From sequence record NC_023557.1: 64,000 nt of DNA. The stretch is one strand, 5' to 3'. Shown here one piece after another: positions 11,594 through 16,161 of the stretch (positions are counted from its first letter, which is position 1; every line of letters starts with the position of its first letter). Both the position numbers and the translations under genes were made by a program. A model generated the notes under the pieces. That model had not been told where the DNA came from, ran no database searches, and saw only the letters and a list, made by a program, of their open reading frames with translations.

Positions 11594-12505
11594 ATGAGTG
11601 ATTTTACTGACTTAACGAAATTGAAGACCGAATTACCACAAAACATCCAAAAGATTGATGAGCAGGATGATGTGGGTGACTTCAGCGATCTTAACGACTA
11701 CCTCATGACCATCATTCCGGATGAACGGCGTGAGCGCTTGATCGCGATCTGTCAAAACTTGAGTACCCTGCAGTATCATCAAGTCCAGCCCGATGTGGAT
11801 CGGTTACTAATGATGGCTAACGACGGTGAAGCGCCGTCGGTGCTCGATGACTTGACCCGGTTGTTATTTGAACACGCTTATGACTTAACGAAAAACATGG
11901 GTTTTAACTGGGCCGATGAGATTGAGTTTGATCAGCTGTTCCTGCTCGGTGATGTAATCGAAGGTGCCATGTTGATTGATGGCATGGAAGACTACGGCGA
12001 CCTCTCAGCGATCCTGGATGGGGATGACTCAGTTGAAGAGAAGGTGGTGGATATCTGGGGCCAGGTGCTCGACAAAGACATGCACCATCTCTTTGAACAG
12101 ATCCAGTCCATCGAACCGGCGGTGATCAGCGGGATCAAACAAGTCACGACCCGACCGTATGCCGAAGACGATTATGCAGATGTGCAGCGTCCACTTGAGT
12201 TTGTGGTTGAGCGGTTGGTGAAAGTCCGTGAAATGATGAAGACCGATGGCGTTGCTTACCAGCATGTGGCCAAGGGCGGGGCATTAGGCGTTGAGCTCGA
12301 TTCACTGATCACGCTATACACCCCTGAGTTGAATGCCGTGACCGATCCGATCGAACTGACCGACCTGCTGGTTGCCTTTACCCTGATCAGCAACACCCCA
12401 GATGGTTTGGTGAAATCCACCGCATCCCGGCTGGCAGAAAAATGGATTGATGATATCGAAGTCATCAATGTGGTAGGTAAACATATCGACAGGTATCCCG
12501 TGTGA
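11594..12505 (+). CDS. Acidic conserved hypothetical protein coupled to the RNAP subunit
   Basis: 303 aa; GTGA overlap with the beta-prime gene. Confidence 0.75.
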   Translation: MSDFTDLTKLKTELPQNIQKIDEQDDVGDFSDLNDYLMTIIPDERRERLIAICQNLSTLQYHQVQPDVDRLLMMANDGEAPSVLDDLTRLLFEHAYDLTKNMGFNWADEIEFDQLFLLGDVIEGAMLIDGMEDYGDLSAILDGDDSVEEKVVDIWGQVLDKDMHHLFEQIQSIEPAVISGIKQVTTRPYAEDDYADVQRPLEFVVERLVKVREMMKTDGVAYQHVAKGGALGVELDSLITLYTPELNAVTDPIELTDLLVAFTLISNTPDGLVKSTASRLAEKWIDDIEVINVVGKHIDRYPV

Positions 12506-13812
12506 ATATTCGCGACTATTTAATCATGGCCTTTCGGGCAGGGGCTTACAAGCAACGCCAGTGGGTGTTGAGTGTCATGAGTATCACCCAGACCCCGGAT
12601 GGTAAATCCGTAGCAGACAGTATGATCCCGTATCAGGCACACCGCATCAACATCGGTGCGACACTCGACTGGGCTTACTGGGATGACTTCAACAAAACCT
12701 TTGTGCCGATTGAGGGAGTGGATGTTAACTTCCCGTTGTTTCGACCCGAGGATCAATACACACTACAACCTGGGGATTTCGCCAATGTCACTGAAGAAGT
12801 TACTACTACTTTCGGCCGTATTCTGGCTAACCATTATTATTTTATCGATGTGGTCGGTGAACGTGTCCCCTTTCAGAACGTAGAATTCAACCGCGGGATG
12901 CTGGAGAAGATCTACAAGGCCCGGGTATTAGAAGACGCCCAGGACTTGCGGCGTTCTGATCCGTTCTACCTGACCGTCGATGAATTCAAACGCTCCGTGG
13001 ATAATGGCTTTGCCTTGGGTGGGTTGTCGAAACTTTGTGTACCGACTGCCTGTCCGGAAACCATGTATCCGCCGAAGTTCATCATCGAGATGCGTGACCG
13101 TCTGTTTGAAGAGCACAAGGATGAGCTCAACAACCCGGTGGTCATGGGGCGTATTCAGGATGAGCTGTTAAAGCACTACCGTGAGTTCCTAATGTCCACC
13201 CCGTCAGCCAAGTTCTTTGTGATCAAGAAGACCATCGACCAGGCCTTCAACAACATGTTCTTGACCGGCGGTATTGCCGGGGCTTTTGGTGGTAACACTG
13301 TTATTACCAACTCGCTGTACGAAGGCTGGAACCTGAAGAACTTCCCGGCGTTAGTGAATGGCTCTATCGAAGCTTCCTTTGACCGTGGTGCGGCTACAGC
13401 CGACGGTGGTGAGAAAGTGAAGATGTTGATCCGTGCCACGCAGAACATCCGTATCACCGATGATGATTGCGGCACCCAGCTCGGGGTACCGTGGGTGATT
13501 GAAGATGCCGGCAAGGCACGCTTCATTAACTCTTACATACTGGATAAGGGTGTGACGATTCTGTTAACTCCGGAGAACATTGATAAGTTCGTCGGTAAGC
13601 CGGTCATGACCCGTTCACCCAGCTTCTGTAAGAAATCCCATGGCGACTCCTGTAAGTTCTGCGTCGGTGCGCATAACGCCACCAACCCACGCGGGATGTC
13701 TTCCGGTACCTCGAAGATCGGTTCTACCCTGATGTTGTTATCGATGAAAGCGATGCATAAAGGCAGTAAGATCGATCTGATCGAGTATAACCTTGATGAG
13801 GTCTTTAACTGA
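12502..13812 (+). CDS. Split multisubunit RNA polymerase beta-prime fragment (phiKZ gp80-like virion RNAP by synteny)
   Basis: Bridge-helix-like DRGAATADGGEKVK, DDCGT, Zn-site RSPSFC..CKFC, trigger-helix-like GSTLMLLSMKAMH. Confidence 0.85.
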   Translation: MNIRDYLIMAFRAGAYKQRQWVLSVMSITQTPDGKSVADSMIPYQAHRINIGATLDWAYWDDFNKTFVPIEGVDVNFPLFRPEDQYTLQPGDFANVTEEVTTTFGRILANHYYFIDVVGERVPFQNVEFNRGMLEKIYKARVLEDAQDLRRSDPFYLTVDEFKRSVDNGFALGGLSKLCVPTACPETMYPPKFIIEMRDRLFEEHKDELNNPVVMGRIQDELLKHYREFLMSTPSAKFFVIKKTIDQAFNNMFLTGGIAGAFGGNTVITNSLYEGWNLKNFPALVNGSIEASFDRGAATADGGEKVKMLIRATQNIRITDDDCGTQLGVPWVIEDAGKARFINSYILDKGVTILLTPENIDKFVGKPVMTRSPSFCKKSHGDSCKFCVGAHNATNPRGMSSGTSKIGSTLMLLSMKAMHKGSKIDLIEYNLDEVFN

Positions 13813-13866: not shown

Positions 13867-14583
13867 ATGTATGGTTTATTAATCCTCGCCTTGCCTCAGT
13901 CACCGTACGTCCACATGAGTGCGATGACTGCGGACAGGTTTACTGAACTGCTCCCACAACTCCAGAAAGAGCTCGATGCAGATATCTTTCCTAATGTGTG
14001 TTTCCAGGGTGCATTCAATGTCAGTAATACCCGTACGGTCACTCAGCTGTTTATTCCGTGTAGCGGATTGGTGGCGGCACGGGAGTTGGGGTATGAACAG
14101 ATCCGCAATATTCTCGCCAACCCAGAGAAGGAAGTCCAGCATGTCACCAACATCGGTGATTGGCTGGGTATTCCTGGTAAGGTGATGTTTGATAATGCGG
14201 ATGGATCTGTGGATGAGGTCGTTGTGACTGACATGTACAAATATCTGGTACATGAAAGAAGAGAGCGCTCTGTCTTTCGGTTCAGTCCTATTGATCTTAG
14301 TATAACCGATACCGAACCATTACCAACTCACCTCTACCCACGTGATCATTTCTACGACCAGGTCTACCTCGACAAAGACGGCGAGCGTGCTTTCCTGTCT
14401 TACGGGTCGTGCGGTGAGGAAGGCTGTGTCATAGAACCCAGAGAAGAGAAACCCGTGCAAGTGTACGGCGTTACCTACTCGTCACTGGATGAAGTGGCCC
14501 GATGTTATAACCTGCCTGAGCAGTACGTGAAAGAACGCGTTGAGTCTGACAGCCTTGAATGGCTGGAGTGGTCATATTTGTAA
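13867..14583 (+). CDS. Paralog of 18132..18914 with C-terminal NUMOD1/HTH-like domain
   Basis: Shared TNIGDWL, VTDxxKYL and GxxYSSxxE motifs. Confidence 0.7.
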   Translation: MYGLLILALPQSPYVHMSAMTADRFTELLPQLQKELDADIFPNVCFQGAFNVSNTRTVTQLFIPCSGLVAARELGYEQIRNILANPEKEVQHVTNIGDWLGIPGKVMFDNADGSVDEVVVTDMYKYLVHERRERSVFRFSPIDLSITDTEPLPTHLYPRDHFYDQVYLDKDGERAFLSYGSCGEEGCVIEPREEKPVQVYGVTYSSLDEVARCYNLPEQYVKERVESDSLEWLEWSYL

Positions 14584-14711: not shown

Positions 14712-14909
14712 ATGACCACAAACCCGCAGTTTATTTTCGTGGCTCAGAATTCTGATGCTACACACAGCGTAGAGAAACTGGAAGTAGGACGCGATACCGA
14801 TGCCCAGAAGAACCTCACGGAACTTCGTAAAGGTTTGCCGTTCGACTTCTCGTTTATCATGTCTGAAGAGGCGATCTATCAACTTCGACAGGCAGGGCAC
14901 ATCAACTAA
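14712..14909 (+). CDS. Small hypothetical protein
   Basis: 65 aa; fits operon orientation; weak RBS. Confidence 0.5.
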   Translation: MTTNPQFIFVAQNSDATHSVEKLEVGRDTDAQKNLTELRKGLPFDFSFIMSEEAIYQLRQAGHIN

Positions 14910-14924
14910 ACTGCTGAGGTAGTC

Positions 14925-15377
14925 ATGACGAACAAATCGGAGATCTCACACGGTGGTGGCGATCAGCCTATGGAAAAAGAGCAAAGCAACTTATCCGTAC
15001 TGGTGAACTACTCCACAGGTGTGATGGAAGGTGACCGTTTTAATTACTCGGTTGCATTGGCGCTGTTGAAAGACGGCATCAAAGTGAAACGCGAAGACTG
15101 GAAGAACGCTTTCCTGGTGTTCGTCCCGGGTAGTCAGAATGTTGAACTGCCAAAAGGGTCGCCGTATGAAGTCGCACTCCACGGTAAGAAGTCCGTTGCC
15201 AATATTCGTCCGCACATCGATCTGTACACGGAGTACGGTGAATTCGAAGTCGGTTGGACAGCCAACCAGGAAGACACTAACGCCGATGACTGGATGATTG
15301 TCTTAGACAAGAACACCAATCAAGACGACAGTGCCGACGAAGAGAAAGAGTCCTCAAACGACGACTCGAAGTCATAA
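14925..15377 (+). CDS. DUF2829 family protein (Tad2-like anti-defence sponge candidate)
   Basis: FNYSVALALLKDGIKVKREDWKNAFLVFVPG...PHID...WTANQEDTNADDWMIV matches the DUF2829 pattern. Confidence 0.75.
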   Translation: MTNKSEISHGGGDQPMEKEQSNLSVLVNYSTGVMEGDRFNYSVALALLKDGIKVKREDWKNAFLVFVPGSQNVELPKGSPYEVALHGKKSVANIRPHIDLYTEYGEFEVGWTANQEDTNADDWMIVLDKNTNQDDSADEEKESSNDDSKS

Positions 15378-15382
15378 ACTCC

Positions 15383-15411
15383 AGGAGAGCTTCGGCTCTC
15401 CTTTTATGCCC
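15383..15411 (+). terminator. UUCG hairpin plus TTTATGCCC
   Basis: AGGAGAGC-TTCG-GCTCTCCT. Confidence 0.75.
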
Positions 15412-15426
15412 ATTAAGGAACATGTA

Positions 15427-15786
15427 ATGAGTGAAAAGAAAGCGTTTGAAGTGGTATTGGATAGCCGTCATGAACCGTACGAGGCTTACCAGTTATTAGT
15501 GGCTCGCATCAATACCTTATTGCGCACCGGTCAAGGCTACCATGAAGTGAAACTCACGAAGTGGCAGCTTTACGATAACGGTCTTCTTATCAAGGGAGAT
15601 GATGATGTGCATATCTCCTTGTTGCGTCATTTCTATTACGATAAGCAACGCAATACGTTTGGTGGTGGCTTCATGGCCTTTGAGATCCTGGAAGATTTGG
15701 GTCGTTACTACAAAGTGCACGATATCACAGAAGGGATGAGCGAGAATGTTGGCCTCGTCTTCACGATCACGGTAACCACACCATAA
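15427..15786 (+). CDS. Small paralog array member 1
   Basis: AAGGAA RBS before ATG 15427; VKLTKWQLYDNG..KGDD. Confidence 0.75.
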   Translation: MSEKKAFEVVLDSRHEPYEAYQLLVARINTLLRTGQGYHEVKLTKWQLYDNGLLIKGDDDVHISLLRHFYYDKQRNTFGGGFMAFEILEDLGRYYKVHDITEGMSENVGLVFTITVTTP

Positions 15787-15795
15787 GAGGTTTAG

Positions 15796-16161
15796 ATGAA
15801 ACCACTCTTCGCCATGAAGTTCGATACCCGTGATGCGTCATTTACCAGTCAGCTGGATTTACTGCAATCCCGTATCAAGAGCTTCTCTAAACGTGGCACA
15901 ACGATTAAGGATGTGGTAGTCACTAGTTGGCAGCTGTTTTCAAACAACATGGTGGTGGCTGGCGACGACCCCGCCTACGTCACCATCATCCACAACTACC
16001 AGTATGACATTGAACAGCAGTGTGTAGTTGGTGGCGCCAGCGCGGTAGATACTCTCAGAGAGATCTGGTCGGCATATGGTCCTGACTCGACACTCCCACG
16101 TTACGGGTCTGTGCCGGGTGCTATCGATATTCAATACACGATTACTGTGTTCACTATTTAA
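15796..16161 (+). CDS. Small paralog array member 2
   Basis: GAGG RBS; VVVTSWQLFSNN..AGDD; aligns end to end with member 1. Confidence 0.75.
   Translation: MKPLFAMKFDTRDASFTSQLDLLQSRIKSFSKRGTTIKDVVVTSWQLFSNNMVVAGDDPAYVTIIHNYQYDIEQQCVVGGASAVDTLREIWSAYGPDSTLPRYGSVPGAIDIQYTITVFTI

Follow-up and report, generated by a model that had tools for sequence, protein, structure and literature searches.

A Tad2-like protein with a non-canonical binding pocket in Erwinia jumbo phage Ea35-70, a candidate sponge for a nucleotide-derived immune signal

The gene Ea357_269 of Erwinia phage Ea35-70 (genus Agricanvirus, a jumbo phage of 271 kb) lies within a 64,000-nucleotide stretch of sequence record NC_023557.1, hereafter the window (100% identical to KF806589; record position minus 207,084 gives window position), and profile searches together with a predicted structure firmly support its product as a true member of the Tad2/DUF2829 family. 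All solved Tad2 relatives are homotetramers, made up of two V-shaped dimers, that sequester immune signals in inter-subunit pockets. In nucleus-forming jumbo phages the DNA is out of reach of nucleases, yet these phages stay exposed to defenses that sense the infection and kill the cell via small diffusible signals. The phage RAY, of the same genus and ca. 95% identical in DNA at this locus, has been shown to form a phage nucleus (PMC10299810), which bears out the premise of an earlier note, made from the letters of the window alone, that a nucleus-forming phage is concerned. Given that the family membership is firm and the genus nucleus-forming, a sponge role is the reasonable default, and we consider, with slightly more than even confidence, that the product acts in the cytoplasm as an oligomer that sponges up a nucleotide-derived immune signal. 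We infer that the protein would be made in the cytoplasm during infection and would assemble, as its solved relatives do, into a homo-oligomer whose between-subunit pockets trap a small nucleotide-derived immune signal, such that the host effector responsible for aborting the infection would never receive this signal and the phage would be rescued from the defense.

The domain call itself is not new, as it already stands in GenBank (where the product is a hypothetical protein, with a note field that cites DUF2829/pfam11195) and in the UniRef names of relatives. What we add here is the non-canonical pocket and its family-wide co-variation, the selection acting on the different regions of the gene, the proteomic link through RAY gp273 and the patchy distribution among jumbo phages.

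Family membership and predicted fold

The open reading frame begins with ATG, has an in-frame stop directly before it and occupies exactly the positions (14925-15377) given in the earlier note. Its product matches Pfam PF11195 ("Tad2-like") at E 4.6e-14 and 53.2 bits (curated cut-off 25 bits) over residues 40-126 and profile positions 2-73 of 73, as the earlier reading as a DUF2829 protein had led one to expect, and it matches phrog_1048 at E 2e-47. A six-frame PF11195 search of the whole genome found this gene as the single locus, i.e., it is present in one copy. The "full DUF2829 pattern" that had been read from the letters is there for the most part, with AL..LK.G.KV.R..W at residues 44-59, W...FL..VPG at 59-69, PHID at 96-99 and W.A.Q.D..ADDW.IV at 111-126, but Tyr41 takes the place of the leading F (with Phe39 two residues upstream) and the top-conserved motif of the family, G-W-N-G-(K/A), reads D-W-K-N-A (DW-K-NAF). 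The acidic tail described alongside this pattern is present as well (Table 1).

Sequence searches against the PDB returned SptTad2 as the top match (1.1e-5), followed by ModTad2 (3e-5), and SPO1 Tad2 was also matched. In an AlphaFold2 model built from a 121-sequence family alignment, the mean predicted local distance difference test score (pLDDT) exceeds 90 over residues 41-120, while residues 1-27 (pLDDT <50) and 130-150 are predicted to be disordered. The modeled domain shows the Tad2 arrangement, in which an N-terminal helix packs on an antiparallel beta sheet and a short helix follows at the C terminus. Foldseek searches of the PDB with this model retrieved ModTad2, SptTad2, HgmTad2/AcrIIA7 and SPO1 Tad2 (E 3e-7 to 3e-5, target template modeling (TM) scores 0.67-0.89) and, apart from Tad2 structures, nothing under E 0.1; by Z-score, the structural comparison placed SptTad2 first (12.5).

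A pocket without the canonical Asn-Gly

We aligned the product with the Tad2 sequence of the SPO1 record (L011:42122-42388). In SPO1 Tad2 the pocket for gcADPR (i.e., 3' and 2' cyclic ADP-ribose, 3'cADPR and 2'cADPR) comprises W25, N26, W73 and D79, with the adenine at T78, I63 and T65 and waters contacted via D67, H71 and S76 (10.1101/2023.05.01.538930). The equivalent pocket of HgmTad2 consists of W21, N22, G23, W87, S90, T92 and D93, and the diphosphate is held by N22 and G23 of both protomers (10.1101/2023.11.15.567273); in SPO1 Tad2, too, the Asn-Gly (N26-G27) binds it. The aromatic sandwich and the acidic anchor are kept in the Ea35-70 protein, where W25, W73 and D79 of SPO1 Tad2 align with the invariant W59, W111 and D117, and T65 aligns with T102. 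Other contacts are changed (I63 to L100, S76 to N114, T78 to E116, D67 to Y104 and H71 to E108), and the SPO1 loop W-N-G-K-N is shortened to W-K-N by the deletion of two residues, a gap that appears both in the MAFFT alignment and in the HMMER alignments with SptTad2 and ModTad2.

The G-W-N-G motif occurs in 113 of the 120 best profile matches and W-N-G in 211 of the 255 relatives that could be parsed, which makes its loss here a marked departure. In proteins lacking the motif the second pocket element changes too: the canonical form is W-[LV]-[AP]-S-Q-[ATGS]-D, and the motif-less proteins favor W-T-P-[STN]-Q-E-D. Glutamate occupies the Thr78 position in 12 of 44 motif-less relatives and is outside the six commonest residues there in the 211 canonical ones. 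Because of this co-variation we regard the Ea35-70 protein as belonging to a recurring divergent pocket type and not as a random wreck. Within the clade, Trp59, Asn61, Trp111, Gln115, Asp117, Asp122 and Trp123 are invariant, while 8 of 14 positions in the pocket loop and helix are variable, against 8 of 77 elsewhere in the domain (Fisher p 2.6e-4), a difference that is only suggestive since it comes from four distinct Agricanvirus sequences and from a pocket set chosen after viewing the alignment. Diversifying selection on specificity and relaxed constraint could each account for it.

Tad2 proteins as a family bind many signals via at least two pockets, so the ligand is not readable from membership: SPO1 Tad2 takes up 3'cADPR and 2'cADPR, ModTad2 binds His-ADPR in the canonical site and Tad2_71 binds N7-cADPR, and the second pocket accommodates cGG, cGAMP and cUG (HgmTad2, SptTad2) or cUMP and cCMP (MoTad2). 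Owing to the deletion of the Asn-Gly clamp and the Glu in place of the adenine-contacting Thr, the ligand of the putative Ea35-70 sponge may not be canonical 3'cADPR. Candidates, in no firm order, may be a further Thoeris signal derived from ADP-ribose, a cyclic mononucleotide or an as yet unidentified Erwinia/Pantoea signal. The ligands named in the earlier note (gcADPR and cGAMP) find no support in the pocket, with its missing Asn-Gly, its Glu116 and an insertion of 29 residues where the cyclic-dinucleotide binders have 35-41.

A canonical anti-Thoeris Tad2, sequestering 3'cADPR and 2'cADPR in the manner of SPO1 Tad2, would agree with the family, the fold and the retained Trp/Trp/Asp core, and type I Thoeris is inhibited by most Tad2 proteins tested so far, the non-canonical homologue no. 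79 included. Nevertheless, we judge it rather improbable, as the Asn-Gly is deleted, Glu116, Tyr104 and Glu108 stand at the positions of Thr78, Asp67 and His71, the great majority of relatives keep W-N-G, and Thoeris goes unreported in the text of an E. amylovora survey (PMC13480210). Somewhat less probable still is a sponge for cyclic di- or mononucleotides that uses the second pocket (at the A-C interface), either for c-di-GMP/cGAMP as in HgmTad2 and SptTad2 or for cUMP/cCMP as in MoTad2, and that would act against CBASS or Pycsar or alter c-di-GMP signaling of the host. In the cyclic-dinucleotide binders (HgmTad2, SptTad2 and SaTad2) the 35-41 residue insertion between beta2 and beta5 forms the dinucleotide cavity; the insertion of the Ea35-70 protein falls short of this length, and that of SPO1 Tad2 has 24 residues.

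The sponge reading also has a more far-reaching form, which we hold to be about as doubtful as a canonical gcADPR sponge. Here, the Ea35-70 protein would represent a distinct Tad2 subtype, marked by a beta1-beta2 loop that is short and lacks Asn-Gly, by a pocket helix of the form W-T/x-P/A-[STN]-Q-E-D and by the conserved extension at the N terminus. Its remodeled pocket would capture a signal that has so far not been linked to Tad2 (perhaps an Erwinia/Pantoea immune messenger), an arms race would be driving the diversification of the pocket residues, and the protein would be the first Tad2-type sponge to act alongside a phage nucleus.

Selection, distribution and genomic setting

As synonymous divergence is low among the E. 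amylovora Agricanvirus phages, the informative comparisons are those with the E. billingiae phage AH06 and with a 287-kb metagenomic relative (L005). The ratio of nonsynonymous to synonymous substitution rates (dN/dS) is 0.17 for the whole gene against AH06 and, by region (AH06/L005), 0.05/0.04 in the N-terminal extension, 0.13/0.08 in the domain and 0.29/1.1 in the tail. The gene is under purifying selection. The tail evolves fast and differs in length and sequence among relatives, with its acidity retained. Residues 1-133 are 100% identical across 16 of 16 E. amylovora Agricanvirus phage records, and a full-length comparison of four sampled E. amylovora Agricanvirus genomes gave one substitution, N145Q. 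The orthologue in RAY, gp273, has been detected by liquid chromatography-tandem mass spectrometry (LC-MS/MS) of crude lysate with 18.7% coverage (PMC6690015 Table 3). A pseudogene or decaying remnant is ruled out by the whole-gene dN/dS, the low values in extension and domain and the detection of the orthologous protein.

Several observations weigh against a sponge. The canonical Asn-Gly is absent from the pocket loop, and in HgmTad2 the W21A/N22A changes markedly reduced gcADPR binding (10.1101/2023.11.15.567273). The N-terminal extension, the best-conserved part of the protein, is without counterpart in any characterized Tad2. In Table S2 of Hadary et al., counting only clear "y, y, y" entries as positive ("n, N/A, y" entries being ambiguous), six of nine W-N-G homologues were clearly positive against at least one of seven systems, and five of six homologues without W-N-G had no clear activity against these seven (10.1101/2025.08.24.671296). 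Motif-less Tad2 proteins thus have lower odds of targeting an already-tested signal. A DefenseFinder survey of 317 E. amylovora genomes leaves Thoeris unmentioned in its text, and CBASS_I and Pycsar come up there solely where correlated systems are listed (PMC13480210); Tad proteins, likewise, are unmentioned there among 227 Erwinia phages. On the other side, homologue no. 79, with a W-S-K-D loop that lacks Asn-Gly, clearly inhibits type I and type IV Thoeris (10.1101/2025.08.24.671296), and therefore a short-loop Tad2 can be a working Thoeris sponge.

It is also conceivable, though we think it quite unlikely, that the Tad2 fold has been recruited to a role other than that of a sponge, e.g., protein binding via the N-terminal extension and the acidic tail, or an AcrIIA7-like anti-CRISPR activity, which would be directed at type II-A Cas9. 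An extension that is more conserved than the domain and absent from characterized sponges would suit such a role, as would the high variability of the pocket positions if it reflects relaxed pocket constraint, and a DUF2829 protein was once reported as AcrIIA7. Yet the core pocket residues are among those that are invariant in the clade, the AcrIIA7 report is disputed, as Li et al. saw no such anti-CRISPR activity (10.1101/2023.11.15.567273), the CRISPR system named as widespread in E. amylovora is type I-E (PMC13480210), and the neighboring genes indicate no partner. A sponge for an immune signal remains the reading that we favor.

An exhaustive phmmer search of 1.84 billion cluster representatives returned 324 relatives at E <=1e-3. 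Only one cluster, that of the own clade, fell below 1e-30, the next match being at 1.9e-14 with ca. 51% identity over the domain, and the nearest GenBank phages outside the clade are Pectobacterium podoviruses (42% identity over residues 39-126). For a comparison among jumbo phages we took ten others that have in common with Ea35-70 the RNA polymerase subunit of phiKZ type whose gene lies just upstream of the block. Nine of the ten gave no PF11195 match, which contradicts, as a general rule, the idea in the earlier note that nucleus-forming phages need a sponge. The tenth, Erwinia phage pEa_SNUABM_48, encodes an 84-residue canonical Tad2 with a W-N-G-K motif at a non-syntenic locus (L023:1474-1728), which points to independent acquisition; this phage represents the closest jumbo lineage outside Agricanvirus (its RNA polymerase subunit is 53% identical). 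A core gene of nucleus-forming phages is ruled out by this distribution, and the patchiness fits accessory counter-defense genes that were acquired independently.

A search of the Ea35-70 genome for a second sponge family, the PF13876 (Acb2-type) domain, found none. Among metagenomic relatives, Tad2-like domains occur fused to PF13876 (Phage_gp49_66; protein P0077), to PF06442 (P0043) and to PF21825 (P0101). We take PF13876 in P0077 to be the Acb2 sponge family, in which case this protein would be a two-family sponge in one chain. In Vibrio phage KVP40 a DUF2829 gene (L010:93-697) lies 8 bases downstream of asiA, an early anti-sigma factor gene, which agrees with Tad2-like genes being expressed early in T4-like phages.

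The features of the locus are collected in Table 1. The gap of 15 bases to the upstream gene and the hairpin with its U-run after the stop suggest that Ea357_268 and the Tad2-like gene probably form a short shared transcription unit. Upon folding, the hairpin is clearly revealed (dG, the folding free energy, -16.3 kcal/mol; z -4.4; equally stable shuffles 0 of 200), although a scan with a terminator consensus missed it. A scan for sigma-70-type promoters around the gene gave 4 matches against 5.4 expected from shuffles and is uninformative, as the phage uses its own RNA polymerases. A search for sequencing runs listed two, neither of them recorded as RNA. Searches of the neighboring genes against Pfam and PHROGs gave none with an assigned function and thus no functional clue.

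Table 1 Features of the Tad2-like gene and its immediate surroundings (window positions)
Feature	Position	Strand	Details
Ea357_268, 65-residue open reading frame	14712..14909	+	phrog_11788, no assigned function; ends 15 bases before the Tad2-like start
Shine-Dalgarno-like GAGG	14916..14919	+	5 bases ahead of the ATG, read from the sequence
Tad2-like (PF11195/DUF2829) gene	14925..15377	+	150 residues plus stop; Ea357_269 = AHI60423.1; orthologue of RAY gp273
N-terminal extension, residues 1-36	14925..15032	+	region of the gene with the lowest dN/dS
Tad2 fold domain, residues 37-127 (predicted)	15033..15305	+	helix 41-49, beta strands, helix 115-119
Trp59-Lys60-Asn61, shortened beta1-beta2 pocket loop	15099..15107	+	canonical in the family: W-N-G-K-(G/N); Asn-Gly missing
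Insertion from beta2 to next core strand, residues 68-96	15126..15212	+	29 residues
Pocket helix segment W111-T-A-N-Q-E-D117...D122-W123	15255..15293	+	Trp, Gln and Asp conserved; more variable within the clade than any other part of the domain
Acidic disordered tail, residues 128-150	15306..15374	+	9 Asp/Glu, 3 Lys
Intrinsic-terminator-like hairpin	15383..15407	+	8 GC-rich pairs, UUCG loop, then UUUUAU; 6 bases past the stop

Upstream of the block, positions 12502-13812 encode the piece of the phiKZ-type multisubunit RNA polymerase beta subunit (phrog_2962, 3e-167, GTG start) whose type is present in 302 phage records and serves as a marker for picking related jumbo phages. It is followed at 13867-14583 by a 238-residue gene (phrog_6749) with a sub-threshold match to Yopt (E 0.005) as its sole Pfam match. 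This gene is the second most variable of the block in the E. amylovora Agricanvirus phages (0-34 amino acid differences, dS 0.03-0.73) after that at 15796-16161, and is almost unalignable with AH06. Directly downstream of the Tad2-like gene lie tandem paralogues at 15427-15786 and 15796-16161 (both phrog_6658, E <=1e-60). The second of these is a mosaic gene, the allele of Ea35-70 being much nearer that of AH06 (15 differences, dS 0.31) than those of Mortimer, Deimos-Minion, Simmy50 and Special G (32 differences in 121 residues, dS 1.2-1.4), which suggests exchange of alleles by recombination.

Comparison with known Tad systems

Among the characterized proteins, SPO1 Tad2 (gp34.65; PDB 8SME, 8SMF, 8SMG, 8WJE) is 26% identical to the Ea357_269 product and consists of 89 residues without extensions, whereas the latter carries a 36-residue N-terminal extension and a 23-residue acidic tail. 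ModTad2/MoTad2 (PDB 8V3E, 9EIB; binding His-ADPR and cUMP) is among the best matches (Foldseek TM 0.82-0.89) and shows both that changes in the pocket direct the family to other signals and that there is a second pocket; unlike the Ea357_269 product, it keeps W-N-G, has Ser at the Thr78 position and lacks terminal extensions. HgmTad2 (AcrIIA7) and SptTad2 (PDB 8KBI-8KBM, 8WJC, 8WJD) share the fold and bind gcADPR together with cGG/cGAMP, but they do so with the longer insertion as the cyclic-dinucleotide pocket and with W21-N22-G23 in the gcADPR pocket, neither of which is present in the Ea35-70 protein. Homologue no. 79 (Hadary et al. 2025, a metagenomic sequence from IMG/VR) likewise lacks Asn-Gly after the first Trp, yet is much shorter (80 residues) and has a very different C-terminal motif, W-K-E-T-M-I-E. 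The non-canonical pocket would make the Ea35-70 protein useful as a probe, as a pull-down from infected Erwinia could identify the signal, much as His-ADPR was found via ModTad2. Given that Agricanvirus phages are candidates for the biocontrol of fire blight, the host defenses that they neutralize bear on their host range.

In the nucleus-forming jumbo phage phiKZ an analogous role falls to Tad1, which sponges up signals of CBASS and Thoeris and which a 2026 review names as the sole anti-defense protein reported to date in jumbo phages (PMC13282480). As a sponge candidate, the Ea357_269 product would be the first of Tad2 type among nucleus-forming phages, and if a chimallivirus genus has a second sponge family, unrelated to Tad1, this would show how such phages handle signaling immunity. 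The analogy is one of role: phiKZ Tad1 is hexameric, is related to Tad2 neither in fold nor in family, and is reportedly injected with the virion.
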